Shown here: positions 34,029 to 59,887 of the stretch, in pieces | How positions within the stretch are numbered: the stretch's first letter is position 1 | How the letters are laid out: each line of letters opens with the position of its first letter | Assembly: GCA_965112155.1 (NCBI GenBank) | Contig: OZ218101.1 | Strand: one strand, 5' to 3' | From: Podarcis liolepis | Lineage: Eukaryota | Length of the DNA: 64,000 nt | Notes under the pieces: generated by a model | Told to the model about the DNA's origin: nothing | Database searches by the model: none | The model's input: the letters and a program-made list of their open reading frames with translations, nothing else | Program-made: the position numbers and the translations under genes

Positions 34029-34615
34029 AGTCGTGTCTGACTCTTCGTGTCCCCATGGACCAGAGCACACCAGGCACTCCTGTCTTCCACTGCTTCCTGC
34101 AGTTTGGTCAAACTCATGCTGGTAGCTTTGAGCACACTATCCAACCTTCTCGTCCTCTGTCGTCCCCTTCTCCTTCTGCCCTCCATCTTTCCCAACATCA
34201 GGGTCTTTTCCAGGGAGTCTTCTCTTCTCATGAGGTGGCCAAAGTATTGGAGCCTTAGCTTTATGATCTGTCCTTCCAATGAGCACTCGGGGCTGATTTC
34301 CTTAAGAATGGATAGGTTTGGTCTTCTTGCAGTCCATGGGACTCTCAAGAGTCTCCTCCAGCACCATAATTCAAAAGCATCAATTCTTCAGCGATCAGCC
34401 TTCTTTATGGTCCAGCTCTCACTTCATGCATCCCCTTCATGGATCACTGCCTTGCCGTGGCGAAGGGGCTTGAATAACTCAGAGAAGCTAGGCAGGGCCA
34501 CCCAAGATGGACAGGTCATAGTGGAGAGTTTAGACCAAACGTGATCCACCTGGAGGAGGAACCGGCAAATCAGTCCAGTATCCCTGCCAAGAAAACTCCA
34601 TGGACAAAGACAACA
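34011..34615 (-). mobile_element. Bov-B (RTE) LINE with inverted 5' segment
   Basis: 34011-34423 is the 3' end on the minus strand (RVPWTARR..EKTLMLGKMEGRRRRGRQR). 34424-34615 resembles Bov-B 5' sequence (ATGGATCACTGCCTTG.CGTGGCGAAGGGGCTTG) on the plus strand. 12-bp TSD GATAAGGAGTAT (33999-34010, 34616-34627). Confidence 0.85.
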
Positions 34616-34751
34616 GATAAGGAGTATATTAGTGCACAAAACTGATTCAGAATTATTTTAGTAGTAGATAGGTAGCCGTGTTGGTCTGCCATAGTCAAAA
34701 TAAAAAAATTCCTTCCAGTAGCACCTTAAAGACCAACTAAGTTAGTTCTTG

Positions 34752-34789
34752 GTATGAGCTTTCGTGTGCATGCACACTTCTTCAGATAC
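34752..34789 (-). ncRNA. Minimal type I hammerhead ribozyme (inverted copy)
   Basis: Reverse complement reads GTAT-CTGAAGA-AGTGTGCATGCACAC-GAAAGCTC-ATAC. Confidence 0.85.
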
Positions 34790-34790
34790 G

Positions 34791-34832
34791 TGGTATCTGA
34801 AGAAGTGTGCATGCACACGAAAGCTCATACCA
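34791..34832 (+). ncRNA. Minimal type I hammerhead ribozyme
   Basis: TGGTAT-CTGAAGA-A-[GTGTG CATG CACAC]-GAAA-GC-TC-ATACCA. Stem I is TGGTAT/ATACCA; predicted cleavage after UC at 34826. Confidence 0.85.
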
Positions 34833-36677
34833 AGAACTAACTTAGTTGGTCTTTAAGGTGCTACTGGAAGGAATTTTTTTATTTAGAATTATTTTAGTTT
34901 TATACCACCAGCTTTATTTTAGTTTTGACTTATTTTTTAAGCTGCAGAACAAAACGTTGTTCTACACAACCAAGTGGGTATTCCTACATCTACTTTAAAA
35001 CACATTACTGAACACAAAATTGACAAGTAGCCTGTTCATTTTCCTCTTCTTAGACACAGTTTCTGATCAACATCTGTGGTGCTTTAAATGTAAAAATGGA
35101 GCATCTGTATCAGGTTGTATGTGGAAAAGGTCTATAAACTGTTAAATTGGCTAAGTTAGTAAATCAATTCTTTAGCGGGCTTGCCAAGTAGAGTTAACAC
35201 TGATTTATGCACCCTGGGGAGTACATAAAAGACTAGTCTCCTGGGACAATCCTTATATAAAAGAATTTACTAGGCTCACTAATTCATCTGCTATATTTTC
35301 CCCATCTTCGACTGTAGCATTGGGGCAGCGGCTACATTTTTCTAACAGATATATAAAAAGTCATTTTACCATAGTGGGATTTGGTTTTGTAGAACTGATT
35401 TGTACATTTGGGAGGCTGAGCTGTCTTGCAGAAATCTTCAGCTTCAGTTCAGGCTTTCAGTTCTGTAGTCCCTAACCACTGAAAACCACATAAATGTGAT
35501 TTTTCTATTTCTAATGCAGACTTTGGTATATAAAGCTGAAAATGGCCAGGGCTGAGATGTCTGAAGGACCACTTTCTCCTATATCAACCCACCTGCATGT
35601 TAAAATCATCTTCTGAAGCCAGCATCCAGGTGCATACATCTTTGGAAATTCAACAGGATTCTATAGGGAACAATGCTTTTTACCATGGAGCATGTTCTGT
35701 CAGGTACATTTAGTGATTTCTTTTTATTGAAATTATCATATGTACCATGGCCTTTGATTAAATGTAATTAAGGATCATTACTGAACATTACATTAAAGGT
35801 AATTATGGATCATTAGGACCCCCACCCCATAAACTTCTTTTCTGGTGGTAGAAGCTGATGTTTTAAAAGATGTTGGTATGTATTTCTAAGAGTCAATTAA
35901 AGCTATACTGTGTGCTTCTGTAAATAGAAATTTGAGGTATATAGTATCACAGTCATCATCAGAAGACAACAGACAACTGCACAGTATTAAATGTTAGTCC
36001 AAACCCAAGCCAGTGGGCTAGAGTTCTGTGGCCTCCCCCCCCCCCCAAGAGAAGGGTCAAATTATGCCTCAAAACAACATAAGGAGGACTGGGCCAAGAC
36101 ACAGGTGTGTCAGTTGCCTTCAAAGATGCTGTGAGGAAGGAACAGGGATGTACTTGTCCTAGTTCTACACAGGACTAAAGTGCACCCTGTTCTGGTCTGG
36201 CATGGGTATATGTGTTTTATGGGAAATCCACACAAATCCTGAAGAATAAAACCTAATGGAAAATACATATTTTACCATTAAACACACGTACACACATGTG
36301 GCAGTTCAACTTCCACTGCTAACAGTTGTACGAGGTACTTCCATCTTCTTTTGTAGTTTTAAAAAGCTTATTTTTTAATTTTAAAAACTGCAGAAGTGGC
36401 TAGCTAGCATTAGAACCTTCTGCTGCAGTTTCAAGTCCCCCTTGGAGAAAAGTATTTCCTTGTCTCCCTCCTCCCTACAGCTCCCTGTTCTTCTGTATGC
36501 CCTATGGTTTGAGAAGAGCCGTAGCTCAGTGACAATGTATTCAATACGGACCCATGGCCCATGACTTGGTATGAGCAGCTTCCTATGTTCCTGTATCCTC
36601 CTATCTTTTGCCACCTCAGGAAGGAGAAATGCTGGTGGCAGTCTGCATCCGGCTCTGCCAGCTGAACCCAAAGTTGC

Positions 36678-54880: not shown

Positions 54881-54998
54881 ACAATCCAATAATAATGAAT
54901 AAACAACAATTTTATTCACATGGAATTTCTGTGCCCTATCAGTGCATTATGCAGTATATTAAAACTGAATTTCTGCTCCAGAAACTTTGCACAATACA

Positions 54999-55342
54999 AA
55001 ATAAAAAAATTCCTTCCAGTAGCACCTTAAAGACCAACTAAGTTAGTTCTTGGCATGAGCTTTCGTGTGCATGCACACTTCTTCAGATACACTGAAACAG
55101 AAGTTGCCAGATCCTTCTGTATAGTGAGAAGGTGGGGAGGGGTATTACTCAGAAGGGTGGTGGGAATGGGAGATTGGCAGATAGCTGAGATGAGCCTGTT
55201 GACGACTCTTAACGACTGCAATAGGTCTTACAGGAAAAGGCAAGGGGTGAGAAGGTGAAAAATGGCTTAGTCATGTATAATGAGATAAGAATCCAATGTC
55301 TTTGTTCAGACCAGGTCTCTCCATGGTTTTAAGTTTGGTAAA
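54999..55342 (-). mobile_element. 5'-truncated Neptune-type PLE (ORF C-terminus + 3' terminal repeat)
   Basis: Terminal ~92 bp nearly identical to the 34.7-kb arms. The minus strand encodes TKLKTMERPGLNKDIGFLSHYT*, resembling the end of a PLE GIY-YIG ORF. 13-bp TSD TTTGCACAATACA at 54986-54998 and 55343-55355. Confidence 0.85.
55053..55090 (-). ncRNA. Minimal type I hammerhead ribozyme
   Basis: GTAT-CTGAAGA-AGTGTGCATGCACAC-GAAAGCTC-ATGC; stem I is retained via a G.U pair. Confidence 0.8.
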
Positions 55343-55381
55343 TTTGCACAATACAGTAACACACATTCACACAATATCCAG

Positions 55382-55383
<2 letters not shown>

Positions 55384-55432
<49 letters not shown>
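55384..55432. repeat. (AT)n microsatellite (left PLE flank)
   Basis: Pure dinucleotide run. Confidence 0.98.
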
Positions 55433-55435
<3 letters not shown>

Positions 55436-55480
55436 GGTTTTGGTGTCTTCGGGTGTCTTCCCGTGTAAGAGTTGGGGTGT

Positions 55481-55525
55481 CTAGGCGACGTTTCGACGAG
55501 GTCTCACTCGTCATCTTCAGGCTGG
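55481..55525 (-). ncRNA. Mirror copy of the minimal hammerhead-like motif (left arm)
   Basis: Reverse complement of 59706-59750. Confidence 0.7.
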
Positions 55526-55757
55526 TGCTTTCGGCTTCTTGTTACTGGAACAGAGCAGGATCTCAGTGTTTGAGTTCCTATAAATACTGTTGAGGGGGTG
55601 TGGTGTATAGCCTCCGACGTTCTGGGCAGAGAGGAAGTTCCCAGGTTAGTGTGCCTTTTCTTCTTTTGTTCCTTAATTACTTGAGGGATATCTTGAGTGA
55701 TTTCTTGAGTGATATTCTGAGTACCACTTAGGAGGGTCATTAAGTGTGGATTAGTTG

Positions 55758-57617
55758 CTAAAGCTTTCGTGTCTTGACCTCTTGAGCTTGTGAAGAGTTT
55801 TTCTGAGAAGATGGCTGTACTGCACTTAGTTGTGCTCTGGCTTGGCTTCGTGTATAGGGGCGAGCTGTGGTTTTGTGCCCTGTGCCAGCCAGATCTGTGT
55901 AGGGATTGCAGGGGGGTGCAGCATCCGGAGGTGCCACTATGGTTTGGCTACTGGATGGTGTCTGTAATTTATCTGTGGAGAGGGTCTGGGTTTGGGTCTG
56001 GTGTGGTTGATTGGTGATGGCGTTCTGTGTGCCTCTGGTTCTGGTGTCGGTTTTTGTGGGGAGGGCTAATTTCCAGATGTCTGGCAGGCGGGACGTGTCG
56101 TCACGCTTGTTCATGTTGTGAGGGTGTTTCTCTATCTCGATGGCTTCCATGATTATTCTCTTGTGGTGATGTTCCATGTTAAAGAGCAATTTGGAATCTG
56201 CAAAATTAATTTCGTGTCCTGTTTCTTTCATGTGTTGGAAAAGAGAGGAAGTTTTTTCTTCTTTTTTGACGGCATTCTTGTGTTCTGCGATACGTGCATT
56301 TATTCGTCTGTTTGTTTGTCCAATGTACGTGGCTGGGCAGACTTTGCAGGGTATTTCATAGACCCCTTGGTTTTCCAACTGGATTTTATCTTTGGGGTTT
56401 CTGAGGATATTGGCTATTTTTTGGTTGGTGCAAAAGGCTGTTTTGATATTGTGTTTATGGAGGATTTTGCTAATTTTATCTGTAGTGCCCTTGATATAAG
56501 GAAGGAGGGCCATGCCATTGTTTTCTTCTGTGTCTTGGTTTTTGGGGGGTGTTTCTTTTTGGATTAGCTTCGTAACCCTGTTTTGCTGGTATCCATTGGC
56601 GATTAACACATTTGAGAGATTCTGTAACTCAGTTGTCAAGTGGTCTTTGTCAGCCAGGCGTTTGGTTCTGGAGATGAGAGTCTTGGCTACGGAGTTTATT
56701 TGTGCAGGGTGGTGGTGTGATTGTGCATGTAAGTAGCGGTTGGTGTGTGTTTTTTTCCGGTAGATAGTGTGTCCTAGGGAGCCATCAGGTTTTTTGTAGA
56801 TTAGGACGTCAAGGAAGGGAAGTTGGTTGTTGGCTTCTATTTCCATAGTGAATTGTATTTTGGGGTGTAGGCTGTTGAGATGTGTGAGGAAGCTATCTAG
56901 TTTTTCTTTCCCGTGTGGCCAAATTACAAAGGTGTCGTCAACATATCTGAGCCAAAGTTTGGGTTTGTGTTCTGACTTGTCTAAAGCATTGGTTTCAAAG
57001 TGTTCCATGTACAAATTTGCGATGACCGGTGAGAGGGGTGATCCCATAGGTGCTCCTTCTATCTGTTTGTATCTTTGTCCATTGTGGATGAAGTACGTGT
57101 TGGTTAGGCAGTGGTTGGTCAGGTCCAGGATGTATTCGGGGGGATTGTATTTGTTTCGAATGGCTGTCAAGGCTTCATTAATGGGCACTTGTGTGAAGAG
57201 AGATACAACATCGAAGCTCACAAGTAGGTCATCGGGATGTAGGTTTTGCTTCTTTATTGTTTCTATGAACTGGAAGGAGTTAGTAACGTGTGAAGCGATG
57301 GATTCTGCATAGGGCTGAAGTTGCTTAGCGAGAAATTTAGCGAGATTTTGTAGAGGTGAGCCTATGGAGCTGACTATTGGTCTGAGTGGTGTTCCTTCTT
57401 TGTGTATCTTAGGGAGACCGTAGAGTTTGGGGCATCTGGATGATTTTTCTCTGGGGATGATTCTTAGCTGGATTTCTTCACTGATAGGAGAGGCTTTTAT
57501 TTTGGATTTGGTGGTTTTTTCCAGATAGGTGGTGGGATCTGTTTTTATAGGTTGGTAGGTAGGGTCTTGGAGTAGATTTGATAGTTTTGCTTGGTAGTCC
57601 GATGTGTTCATCACAAC
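55758..57617 (-). CDS. PLE reverse transcriptase + GIY-YIG endonuclease, left arm (N-terminally truncated)
   Basis: Same protein as the right arm except LAKQ vs LTKQ and NRV vs NMV. It extends a few codons further 5' (VVMNTSDY), with an in-frame ATG at 57611-57609. Confidence 0.95.
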   Translation of the reverse strand, partial: VVMNTSDYQAKLSNLLQDPTYQPIKTDPTTYLEKTTKSKIKASPISEEIQLRIIPREKSSRCPKLYGLPKIHKEGTPLRPIVSSIGSPLQNLAKFLAKQLQPYAESIASHVTNSFQFIETIKKQNLHPDDLLVSFDVVSLFTQVPINEALTAIRNKYNPPEYILDLTNHCLTNTYFIHNGQRYKQIEGAPMGSPLSPVIANLYMEHFETNALDKSEHKPKLWLRYVDDTFVIWPHGKEKLDSFLTHLNSLHPKIQFTMEIEANNQLPFLDVLIYKKPDGSLGHTIYRKKTHTNRYLHAQSHHHPAQINSVAKTLISRTKRLADKDHLTTELQNLSNVLIANGYQQNRVTKLIQKETPPKNQDTEENNGMALLPYIKGTTDKISKILHKHNIKTAFCTNQKIANILRNPKDKIQLENQGVYEIPCKVCPATYIGQTNRRINARIAEHKNAVKKEEKTSSLFQHMKETGHEINFADSKLLFNMEHHHKRIIMEAIEIEKHPHNMNKRDDTSRLPDIWKLALPTKTDTRTRGTQNAITNQPHQTQTQTLSTDKLQTPSSSQTIVAPPDAAPPCNPYTDLAGTGHKTTARPYTRSQARAQLSAVQPSSQKNSSQAQEVKTRKL

Positions 57618-57622
57618 ATCAC

Positions 57623-59473
57623 AACACATCGGACTACCAAGCAAAACTATCAAATCTACTCCAAGACCCTACCTACCAACCTATAAAAACAGATCCCACC
57701 ACCTATCTGGAAAAAACCACCAAATCCAAAATAAAAGCCTCTCCTATCAGTGAAGAAATCCAGCTAAGAATCATCCCCAGAGAAAAATCATCCAGATGCC
57801 CCAAACTCTACGGTCTCCCTAAGATACACAAAGAAGGAACACCACTCAGACCAATAGTCAGCTCCATAGGCTCACCTCTACAAAATCTCGCTAAATTTCT
57901 CACTAAGCAACTTCAGCCCTATGCAGAATCCATCGCTTCACACGTTACTAACTCCTTCCAGTTCATAGAAACAATAAAGAAGCAAAACCTACATCCCGAT
58001 GACCTACTTGTGAGCTTCGATGTTGTATCTCTCTTCACACAAGTGCCCATTAATGAAGCCTTGACAGCCATTCGAAACAAATACAATCCCCCCGAATACA
58101 TCCTGGACCTGACCAACCACTGCCTAACCAACACGTACTTCATCCACAATGGACAAAGATACAAACAGATAGAAGGAGCACCTATGGGATCACCCCTCTC
58201 ACCGGTCATCGCAAATTTGTACATGGAACACTTTGAAACCAATGCTTTAGACAAGTCAGAACACAAACCCAAACTTTGGCTCAGATATGTTGACGACACC
58301 TTTGTAATTTGGCCACACGGGAAAGAAAAACTAGATAGCTTCCTCACACATCTCAACAGCCTACACCCCAAAATACAATTCACTATGGAAATAGAAGCCA
58401 ACAACCAACTTCCCTTCCTTGACGTCCTAATCTACAAAAAACCTGATGGCTCCCTAGGACACACTATCTACCGGAAAAAAACACACACCAACCGCTACTT
58501 ACATGCACAATCACACCACCACCCTGCACAAATAAACTCCGTAGCCAAGACTCTCATCTCCAGAACCAAACGCCTGGCTGACAAAGACCACTTGACAACT
58601 GAGTTACAGAATCTCTCAAATGTGTTAATCGCCAATGGATACCAGCAAAACATGGTTACGAAGCTAATCCAAAAAGAAACACCCCCCAAAAACCAAGACA
58701 CAGAAGAAAACAATGGCATGGCCCTCCTTCCTTATATCAAGGGCACTACAGATAAAATTAGCAAAATCCTCCATAAACACAATATCAAAACAGCCTTTTG
58801 CACCAACCAAAAAATAGCCAATATCCTCAGAAACCCCAAAGATAAAATCCAGTTGGAAAACCAAGGGGTCTATGAAATACCCTGCAAAGTCTGCCCAGCC
58901 ACGTACATTGGACAAACAAACAGACGAATAAATGCACGTATCGCAGAACACAAGAATGCCGTCAAAAAAGAAGAAAAAACTTCCTCTCTTTTCCAACACA
59001 TGAAAGAAACAGGACACGAAATTAATTTTGCAGATTCCAAATTGCTCTTTAACATGGAACATCACCACAAGAGAATAATCATGGAAGCCATCGAGATAGA
59101 GAAACACCCTCACAACATGAACAAGCGTGACGACACGTCCCGCCTGCCAGACATCTGGAAATTAGCCCTCCCCACAAAAACCGACACCAGAACCAGAGGC
59201 ACACAGAACGCCATCACCAATCAACCACACCAGACCCAAACCCAGACCCTCTCCACAGATAAATTACAGACACCATCCAGTAGCCAAACCATAGTGGCAC
59301 CTCCGGATGCTGCACCCCCCTGCAATCCCTACACAGATCTGGCTGGCACAGGGCACAAAACCACAGCTCGCCCCTATACACGAAGCCAAGCCAGAGCACA
59401 ACTAAGTGCAGTACAGCCATCTTCTCAGAAAAACTCTTCACAAGCTCAAGAGGTCAAGACACGAAAGCTTTAG
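57623..59473 (+). CDS. PLE reverse transcriptase + GIY-YIG endonuclease, right arm (N-terminally truncated)
   Basis: Motifs YGLPKIHK, LRPIVS, LVSFDVVSLFT, GAPMGSPLSP, WLRYVDDTF, LPFLDV and YRKKT (RT), then GVYEIPC..C..YIGQT.R...R..EH (GIY-YIG). The frame is open to TAG at 59473. The ORF-track start at 57578 lies in the opposite arm and is artefactual. Confidence 0.95.
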   Translation, partial: NTSDYQAKLSNLLQDPTYQPIKTDPTTYLEKTTKSKIKASPISEEIQLRIIPREKSSRCPKLYGLPKIHKEGTPLRPIVSSIGSPLQNLAKFLTKQLQPYAESIASHVTNSFQFIETIKKQNLHPDDLLVSFDVVSLFTQVPINEALTAIRNKYNPPEYILDLTNHCLTNTYFIHNGQRYKQIEGAPMGSPLSPVIANLYMEHFETNALDKSEHKPKLWLRYVDDTFVIWPHGKEKLDSFLTHLNSLHPKIQFTMEIEANNQLPFLDVLIYKKPDGSLGHTIYRKKTHTNRYLHAQSHHHPAQINSVAKTLISRTKRLADKDHLTTELQNLSNVLIANGYQQNMVTKLIQKETPPKNQDTEENNGMALLPYIKGTTDKISKILHKHNIKTAFCTNQKIANILRNPKDKIQLENQGVYEIPCKVCPATYIGQTNRRINARIAEHKNAVKKEEKTSSLFQHMKETGHEINFADSKLLFNMEHHHKRIIMEAIEIEKHPHNMNKRDDTSRLPDIWKLALPTKTDTRTRGTQNAITNQPHQTQTQTLSTDKLQTPSSSQTIVAPPDAAPPCNPYTDLAGTGHKTTARPYTRSQARAQLSAVQPSSQKNSSQAQEVKTRKL

Positions 59474-59705
59474 CAACTAATCCACACTTAATGACCCTCC
59501 TAAGTGGTACTCAGAATATCACTCAAGAAATCACTCAAGATATCCCTCAAGTAATTAAGGAACAAAAGAAGAAAAGGCACACTAACCTGGGAACTTCCTC
59601 TCTGCCCAGAACGTCGGAGGCTATACACCACACCCCCTCAACAGTATTTATAGGAACTCAAACACTGAGATCCTGCTCTGTTCCAGTAACAAGAAGCCGA
59701 AAGCA

Positions 59706-59750
59706 CCAGCCTGAAGATGACGAGTGAGACCTCGTCGAAACGTCGCCTAG
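59706..59750 (+). ncRNA. Minimal hammerhead-ribozyme-like motif in the Poseidon-type PLE 3' terminus
   Basis: CTGAAGA-T-[GACGAG/TGAGAC/CTCGTC stem II]-GAAA-CG-TC. Core boxes are intact, but stem I is only about 2 bp (GC/GC). Confidence 0.7.
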
Positions 59751-59826
59751 ACACCCCAACTCTTACACGGGAAGACACCCGAAGACACCAAAACCTGCAT
59801 TCCTGTACCCGTGAAAATCTACGAAA

Positions 59827-59828
<2 letters not shown>

Positions 59829-59887
<59 letters not shown>
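59829..59887. repeat. (AT)n microsatellite (right PLE flank)
   Basis: Pure dinucleotide run. Confidence 0.98.

Follow-up and report, generated by a model that had tools for sequence, protein, structure and literature searches.

Penelope-like elements (PLEs) are retroelements whose insertions have a describable signature. In Drosophila virilis, Penelope copies carry inverted terminal repeats of variable size (PMC2377424). Elements of Adineta vaga have adjacent inverted pseudo-long terminal repeats (pLTRs), a 31-bp tail on one of them and target-site duplications (TSDs) of 8-10 bp (PMC3846280). The 30-40-bp tail and the inverted 5'-truncated copy have been described for PLEs (PMC8557442), and work on PAc, a Poseidon element of Anolis carolinensis, showed that reverse transcription begins at two adjacent internal RNA sites, the tail being the interval between them (Frangieh et al., PMC11167929). 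PLEs also carry a minimal hammerhead ribozyme (min-HHR), whose features were listed by Cervera and de la Pena and which is thought to act as a dimer (PMC4209133). Here, we describe a 222-bp insertion at positions 34663-34884 of a 64,000-nt stretch of Podarcis liolepis DNA (GenBank assembly GCA_965112155.1, contig OZ218101.1; the whole stretch is hereafter the window). This locus is the known insertion signature in miniature, i.e. an ordinary by-product of PLE retrotransposition.

The insertion is an asymmetric palindrome (Table 1). A repeat search returned inverted arms at 34695-34789 and 34793-34887 (95 nt, 99% identity, 3 nt apart), and within the bounds of the TSD the two arms agree at 92 of 92 positions on either side of a GTG loop. 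An earlier sequence-only reading of this DNA had announced a perfect 92-bp inverted repeat with a 3-nt loop and a clean 14-bp TSD. Both are there, the two copies of AGAATTATTTTAGT being identical at 14 of 14 positions. What breaks the symmetry is a stretch of 33-35 nt found on the left only and unpaired with the right arm. At the left junction AGT is read three times in a row (34660-34668), as the end of the TSD, as the start of the insert and once more. Since the tail of other copies of the family begins at 34666, the first three nucleotides of the insert may be extra letters or microhomology at the priming site. At the other end of the arms, where they meet the loop (hereafter the hinge), the GTG matches the normal upstream sequence of the family (..CAGT/GTATC, the slash marking the hinge) on neither strand. 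This normal continuation is visible in a second copy at 54999-55342 and in the loose-end consensus of read contigs. Homology between the palindrome and the second copy ends exactly at the hinge, upstream of which the latter runs on as ..CTTCTGTTTCAGT/GTATC.

That second copy is the only other occurrence of the arm found by BLAST of the insert against the window (54997-55090, minus strand, 98.9% identity), and it bears out the match to a PLE terminus proposed from the letters. It is an ordinary copy with its own 13-bp TSD, TTTGCACAATACA (54986-54998 and 55343-55355). It holds the end of an open reading frame (ORF; ..RPGLNKDIGFLSHYT, then the stop), about 180 nt of pLTR, the motifs TATACA and TCAGTG just upstream of helix I, and a hammerhead at 55086-55057. 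The family to which the arms belong is very abundant: summed over the arm, word depth is 10^4-10^5 times that of the unique right flank, a ratio that is not a copy number. In the read contigs, loose ends show other family copies stopping at 34666 (with the extension) or at 34696/97 (without it), with diverse flanks. Two alternative 3' ends about 30 nt apart are the hallmark of PLEs. Several features of PLE insertions are found here: a hammerhead in the pLTR, a one-sided tail, two 3' ends, 5' truncation with an adjoining inverted copy, an AT-rich target and TSDs that differ in length (14 and 13 bp in the only two copies available). Exact-pattern scans for more copies returned none, either in metagenome contigs or in genome contigs of bacteria and archaea, where lizard DNA would not be expected.

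The abundance of the family might suggest a small non-autonomous element in its own right, with a hairpin master of RNA or DNA amplifying as a unit and one ribozyme per strand. We regard this as very unlikely. At the hinge (34789 and 34793), the listed groups of loose ends, whether from DNA or from RNA, continue as the usual upstream sequence ..CTTCTGTTTCAGT, so that most family copies are ordinary at this point, and the window has one palindromic copy only. Moreover, such a unit would be missing the stretch of downstream RNA, reaching +172 in PAc, on which the protein depends (PMC11167929).

The insertion is young. Positions 34400-35150 were compared with Logan contigs of three DNA runs (organisms A, B and H) and with the raw reads of a single RNA run. 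In the run of organism B (X2), a 1233-nt contig matches 34575-34648 and then directly 34885-35150, with the 14-mer present once. This is a precise empty site, which reads ..TTCAGAATTATTTTAGTTTTATACC.. and is AT-rich. In the best-matching run (X1), one contig stops exactly at 34662 and another starts exactly at 34885. Contigs from a filled site alone should reach about 30 nt into the element, whereas a de Bruijn graph built from reads of both alleles, filled and empty, should break as seen here, and both are probably present. In X12, a contig runs leftward through 34885 for 399 nt without a break. It is the empty site in X2 and the two-allele break pattern in X1 that establish the youth of the insertion, and the identity of the arms is consistent with a recent origin.

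These data also bear on whether the insert could be a miniature inverted-repeat transposable element (MITE) or fold-back DNA transposon moved by cut-and-paste, or else an assembly artefact, which we find extremely improbable. It is true that the insert is small, has a long terminal inverted repeat and lies in an AT-rich target, all of which would suit such a transposon at first sight. But the left terminus (34663-34697) has no inverted partner, the TSDs are of 14 and 13 bp instead of a fixed length, and the sister copy, which carries an ORF end, is non-palindromic, as are most family contigs. To our knowledge, a 14-bp TSD exceeds the lengths seen in the cut-and-paste superfamilies. An artefact of assembly is ruled out by the exact TSD and by the precise empty site in an independent run. 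The sequence-only reading had preferred a PLE retro-product to a MITE, noting that fixed-length TSDs and fixed termini would speak for the latter. The 14-bp TSD, the one-sided tail, the near-identity to the 3' end of a truncated PLE copy, the two family 3' ends and the empty site all side with its choice, and neither TSD length nor 3' end is fixed.

Table 1. Features of the 222-bp insertion, of its plus-strand hammerhead and of the ordinary copy of the same family
Feature	Position	Strand	Remark
TSD, left copy, 14 bp AGAATTATTTTAGT	34649-34662		single occurrence in the X2 contig
PLE tail, 33-35 nt, left arm only	34663-34697	-	element sense ...ATTTT/GACTATGGCAGACCAACACGGCTACCTATCTACT; first AGT repeats the TSD end
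Left arm, the PLE family's final 92 nt, from helix I to the proximal 3' end	34698-34789	-	92/92 complementary to right arm; 98.9% identical to 54997-55090
Minimal hammerhead, helix I of 4 bp, C17 at 34756	34752-34789	-	descriptor match 34785-34756
Loop GTG, 3 nt	34790-34792		
Right arm, identical 92 nt, ending at the proximal tail-less 3' end	34793-34884	+	
Minimal type I hammerhead	34792-34831	+	predicted cut after C17 (34826); loop letters extend helix I to 5-6 bp
Helix I, 5' strand GGUAU	34792-96	+	
Core CUGAAGA	34797-803	+	
Bulged nucleotide A	34804	+	
Helix II GUGUGCAUGCACAC	34805-18	+	
Core GAAA	34819-22	+	
15.2-16.2 GC	34823-24	+	
16.1 U	34825	+	
C17, cleavage site, C	34826	+	
Helix I, 3' strand AUACC	34827-31	+	
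TSD, right copy, 14 bp	34885-34898		
Ordinary non-palindromic 5'-truncated copy, 344 bp, tail-less 3' end	54999-55342	-	BLAST, TSD

Some 20 kb away lies a much larger palindrome of a second PLE family (55431-59830), inserted in (TA)n. Its arms, of 2178 nt, are 100% identical, are separated by a 14-nt spacer and each encode RVT_1 and GIY-YIG domains. The protein matches best a Podarcis muralis sequence (97%), whereas Anolis proteins are 46-47% identical. A 30-nt tail (59801-59830) is present on the right side only. The ATG (59717) lies inside the hammerhead, with the arm ending at +84 and the tail at +114 from it. These ends match the geometry of PAc, whose reverse transcription starts 111-118 nt into the ORF (PMC11167929). 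On the minus strand the spacer reads ..DVVM/NTSDYQ, in agreement with the Podarcis protein P0001 (ATVVMNTSDYQ), and on the plus strand it does not. The loop is therefore copied from a template and carries on the sequence of the tail-less arm. On a small scale, the 222-bp insert repeats this order of parts, with two arms around a loop and a tail on one side only.

We think it rather probable that the 222-bp insert is a single dead-on-arrival retrotransposition product of an endonuclease-bearing PLE, whose complementary DNA (cDNA) underwent self-primed copy-back. Beyond the observed anatomy, TSD, empty site, family identity and layout common to the two palindromes, we infer an order of events, self-priming and immobility as follows. 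The PLE endonuclease would nick an AT-rich site with a 14-bp stagger, and the left target end would prime reverse transcription at the distal internal start site, producing the tail (34663-34697). Synthesis would stop only some 92 nt later, on reaching the hammerhead's 5' edge. The new cDNA would then fold back and be copied on itself, giving the second, inverted arm. Finally, a nick at the border of tail and arm followed by fill-in would open the hairpin, leaving the tail on one arm. Followed strand by strand, this scheme would yield in both palindromes a tail beside the flank that served as primer, a second arm that has no tail and stops at the proximal site, and a loop contiguous with this second arm. 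If the cDNA snaps back and is then nicked at the tail border and filled in, the loop should be templated, as it is in the 4.4-kb palindrome. A "propensity for self-priming" was already inferred for Adineta vaga elements from palindromes at the inverted junction (PMC3846280). The insert is non-coding and is not expected to move again, because it ends at the start sites and lacks the downstream RNA (up to +172) required by the PAc protein (PMC11167929).

The tail can pair back onto the arm in both families, through GUUGGUCU/AGACCAAC in the small one (34663-34755, minus strand) and CACGGG/CCCGUG in the large one (59745-59830, plus strand). Such pairing would place the proximal start site in a loop. 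The resulting start-site stem-loop is not significant relative to shuffled sequences in either family (z of -0.71 and -1.78).

Several observations weigh against the copy-back scheme or against parts of it. Base pairing at the turn-back point is visible in neither the 222-bp nor the 4.4-kb palindrome, and the 3-nt loop of the former is untemplated. Classical hairpin priming is therefore a proposed step. Many inverted junctions in the read contigs have unequal arms, which pure copy-back cannot produce. Among the contigs listed, none spans the unique flank into the element, and the evidence for the filled allele is therefore the assembly, together with the contig breaks in X1. Finally, the ordinary copy retains only 23 codons of its ORF. 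This remnant, RPGLNKDIGFLS, resembles at the level of a motif only the C-terminus of PLE endonucleases, HPNNLNRDDGFxLS (in 38 of 120 PLE proteins). It gave no significant match in tblastn against the PLE ORF of the window, in blastp against the 120 PLE proteins, in Pfam or with an endonuclease C-terminus profile. Since the resemblance is statistically insignificant, the tie of the small family to a master bearing a reverse transcriptase is indirect.

The lack of pairing at the turn and the untemplated loop would fit better a scheme in which two cDNAs were made, one per nicked target strand, and one of them, after gaining about three untemplated letters, jumped onto the 3' end of the other. The distal one would carry the tail and the proximal one would lack it, and synthesis of both would have ended by run-off where the shared RNA begins, at the edge of helix I. 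A single tail per palindrome would come naturally from such a scheme, and purified PAc does cleave and extend both strands, with two adjacent internal starts (PMC11167929). The junctions in the read contigs also speak for it: 10 of the 15 best-supported have their right breakpoint at 34791-34797 and a variable one in the partner arm, which amounts to unequal arms with a preferred 5' end. An RNA 5' end is plausible there, at TCA(+1)GTG with TATACA at -30. This must be set against the neighbouring palindrome, whose 2178-nt arms differ by 14 nt, so that both enzymes would have had to stop nearly together inside the ORF. It must also be set against the RNA run (X23), where read starts do not pile up at the hinge and many reads pass through it. 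On balance, we see the joining of two cDNAs as possible but rather unlikely. A replication origin of the second arm, by template switching after insertion of a 5'-truncated PLE copy, seems to us highly improbable. Perfect hairpins are known to arise from switching at replication forks (PMC8794818), yet here one 14-bp TSD encloses both arms and the empty allele lacks all 222 bp. In addition, the tail-less arm stops at the canonical proximal PLE end and not at a random point, and the 4.4-kb palindrome repeats the layout.

The hinge may be a breakpoint hot spot. The right breakpoint of the 10 junctions is narrowly confined, several of them being preceded by GT (the normal letters before GTATC), while their left breakpoints range over 34722-34757. 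In the ordinary copy, on the minus strand, TATACA (55118-55123) lies 30 nt upstream of the A in TCAGTG (55090-55095), an A that sits 3 nt before helix I. To judge from the letters, TATACA and TCA(+1)GTG look like a TATA/initiator pair. The same letters, as cttctgtttcag/, look like a 3' splice site, with possible donors upstream at GTAAGA (55231-55226) and GTAATA (55148-55143), minus strand. A parallel exists in D. virilis Penelope, where helix I begins right after an intron (PMC4209133). What lies at the 5' edge of helix I may thus be the first nucleotide of an RNA driven by the pLTR, or a strong stop for the enzyme. We advance as a tentative and, for the time being, doubtful idea that the hinge is a preferred 5' end, 1-3 nt from the start of the pLTR transcript, and that mini-palindromes are full run-off cDNAs, begun at the start sites closest to the PLE mRNA 5' end, that turn back or jump. 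If true, thousands of such copies would record where PLE transcription starts and how its reverse transcriptase finishes and primes again. Genome data alone would then suffice to test models of the second half of PLE integration.

The motif in the arms is a min-HHR by its letters. The plus-strand copy has all four features listed for this class (PMC4209133): the conserved core C3-A9 (CUGANGA), G12-A14 (GAA), A15.1, U16.1 and H17; an extra nucleotide between 9 and 10.1 (A 34804); the pair G10.1-C11.1 (G 34805 with C 34818); and the palindromic 15.2-16.2 (G 34823 and C 34824 in AGCU). A descriptor built from these features matched the window at 34797-34826 (plus), 34785-34756 (minus) and 55086-55057 (minus) only, and never in 100 dinucleotide-preserving shuffles of the window. 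The hammerhead letters, from CUGAAGA to C17, thus lie where the sequence-only reading had put them, and on either strand as it had said. The hammerhead search that it proposed has given a mixed outcome. The descriptor recovers both arms and the ordinary copy, whereas the Rfam hammerhead families (RF00163 and relatives) gave nothing at the gathering threshold in the window and nothing at E<=10 in 34600-34950. This miss is expected because the motif has no helix III. Alone, a 45-nt segment with the motif takes the expected fold (-12.5 kcal/mol, z of -2.5).

The description of the insert as essentially two back-to-back hammerheads, or as ribozyme-only, did not hold. The hammerheads occupy about 78 of the 222 nt, the remainder being the PLE reverse-transcription start region and the tail, and any transcript has one hammerhead with its perfect complement upstream. 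The entire insert folds at -174 kcal/mol (plus strand) or -168 kcal/mol (minus strand), against -11 to -12.5 kcal/mol for the ribozyme fold. Given this difference, a full transcript would lock the hammerhead in a 92-bp hairpin, without a dimer in cis, making cleavage unlikely. From these folding estimates, the insert probably has no ribozyme function. In the RNA run, read ends do not pile up at 34826/27, and the same was reported for PAc (PMC11167929). Of the RNA reads on this stretch, 98% continue into unlike sequence and therefore derive from other copies. The hammerheads are passengers of the pLTR sequence. In thousands of family contigs from the DNA runs of organisms A, B and H, the stretch from helix I to U16.1 has no variant with a share of 10% or more. 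The sole variant of the motif that is common by this threshold is C17>U, still an allowed H, and the 58 nt downstream have several common variants. Helix II (34805-34818, GUGUGCAUGCACAC) is wholly self-complementary, and two RNAs co-fold at -42 kcal/mol versus twice -12.5 kcal/mol. Given these values, RNA dimers could form through helix II, besides AGCU.

Two other identities were considered for the insert and rejected. A non-LTR retrozyme does not fit since the arms are inverted, and a direct repeat of the unit was found neither by the repeat search nor by BLAST within the window. As for a microRNA or hairpin-RNA gene, the only matches are generic hairpins below threshold (MIR1222, 65.8 bits against 90), the locus is absent in a related sample, and nearly all the RNA reads come from other copies. 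Outside the insertion, the left flank (34426-34633) is a very high-copy repeat whose other copies, in the read contigs, stop at 34616, beyond which their flanks differ. Probably a different retroelement ends here with its 3' end, and the repeat overlaps a 165-aa ORF (34047-34544) without a Pfam match.

As a young insertion, this locus documents recent PLE activity in a lacertid lizard and preserves an insertion intermediate as yet unaltered by mutation. It also limits, along with the 4.4-kb palindrome, how PLE integration can be modelled, through three details that models have so far not needed to address: only one arm has a tail, the tail-less arm stops at the canonical proximal start site, and the loop is contiguous with that arm. 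There are practical consequences too. Pipelines that seek inverted repeats with a TSD could label such copies as MITEs, and within an intron a perfect 92-bp hairpin could give rise to double-stranded RNA or make the DNA fragile.

How does this locus compare with known systems? It is like MITEs and fold-back transposons in being small and non-coding, with a long inverted repeat and an AT-rich target. It is unlike them in its asymmetric termini, its variable TSD of 13-14 bp across copies and its linear sister copies with an ORF end. Inversions within an insertion bounded by one TSD can also arise by hairpin-primed second-strand synthesis or by L1 twin priming, where the cDNA 3' end turns back or a second priming takes place on the other target strand. 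Twin priming of L1 inverts a different part of the element and produces no palindrome, whereas both arms of the 222-bp insert cover the same segment. Non-LTR retrozymes are likewise non-coding PLE-related carriers of type I hammerheads (PMC7229834; bioRxiv 10.64898/2026.07.22.740005). However, they are direct tandem repeats cut into circles by two hammerheads per RNA, and the insert is inverted with one per RNA. Relative to the min-HHR of PLEs (PMC4209133), the motif here is known from its letters and faces its own perfect complement.

The closest biochemical parallel is PAc, studied in vitro (PMC11167929). It shares with our locus a tail delimited by two internal start sites with a spacing of about 30 nt, a hammerhead that precedes the proximal one of these by about 85-90 nt, and the cleavage of AT-rich targets. 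Both host and family differ, the PLE of the window that bears a reverse transcriptase being about 46-47% identical to Anolis proteins. The small family has no ORF starting inside the hammerhead, and palindromic products are not analysed in that work. The closest genomic parallels are Penelope of D. virilis, Pen2a of Adineta vaga and Naiad (PMC2377424, PMC3846280, PMC8557442). Our literature searches on PLE palindromes or hairpins and on Podarcis PLEs returned no paper on miniature palindromes. These three studies do report PLE copies joined head to head in inverted orientation, tailed on one side and bounded by a TSD, and the idea of a new class of palindromes had to be given up. The locus shares with these elements the head-to-head inverted copy, the tail of 30-40 bp at one end, the short and variable TSD, the AT-rich or microsatellite target and the hammerhead in the repeat. 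Unlike them, the 222-bp insert has nothing between its inverted repeats, and both arms end at about 92 nt, at the 5' edge of the hammerhead: it is the last part of a pLTR, twice.

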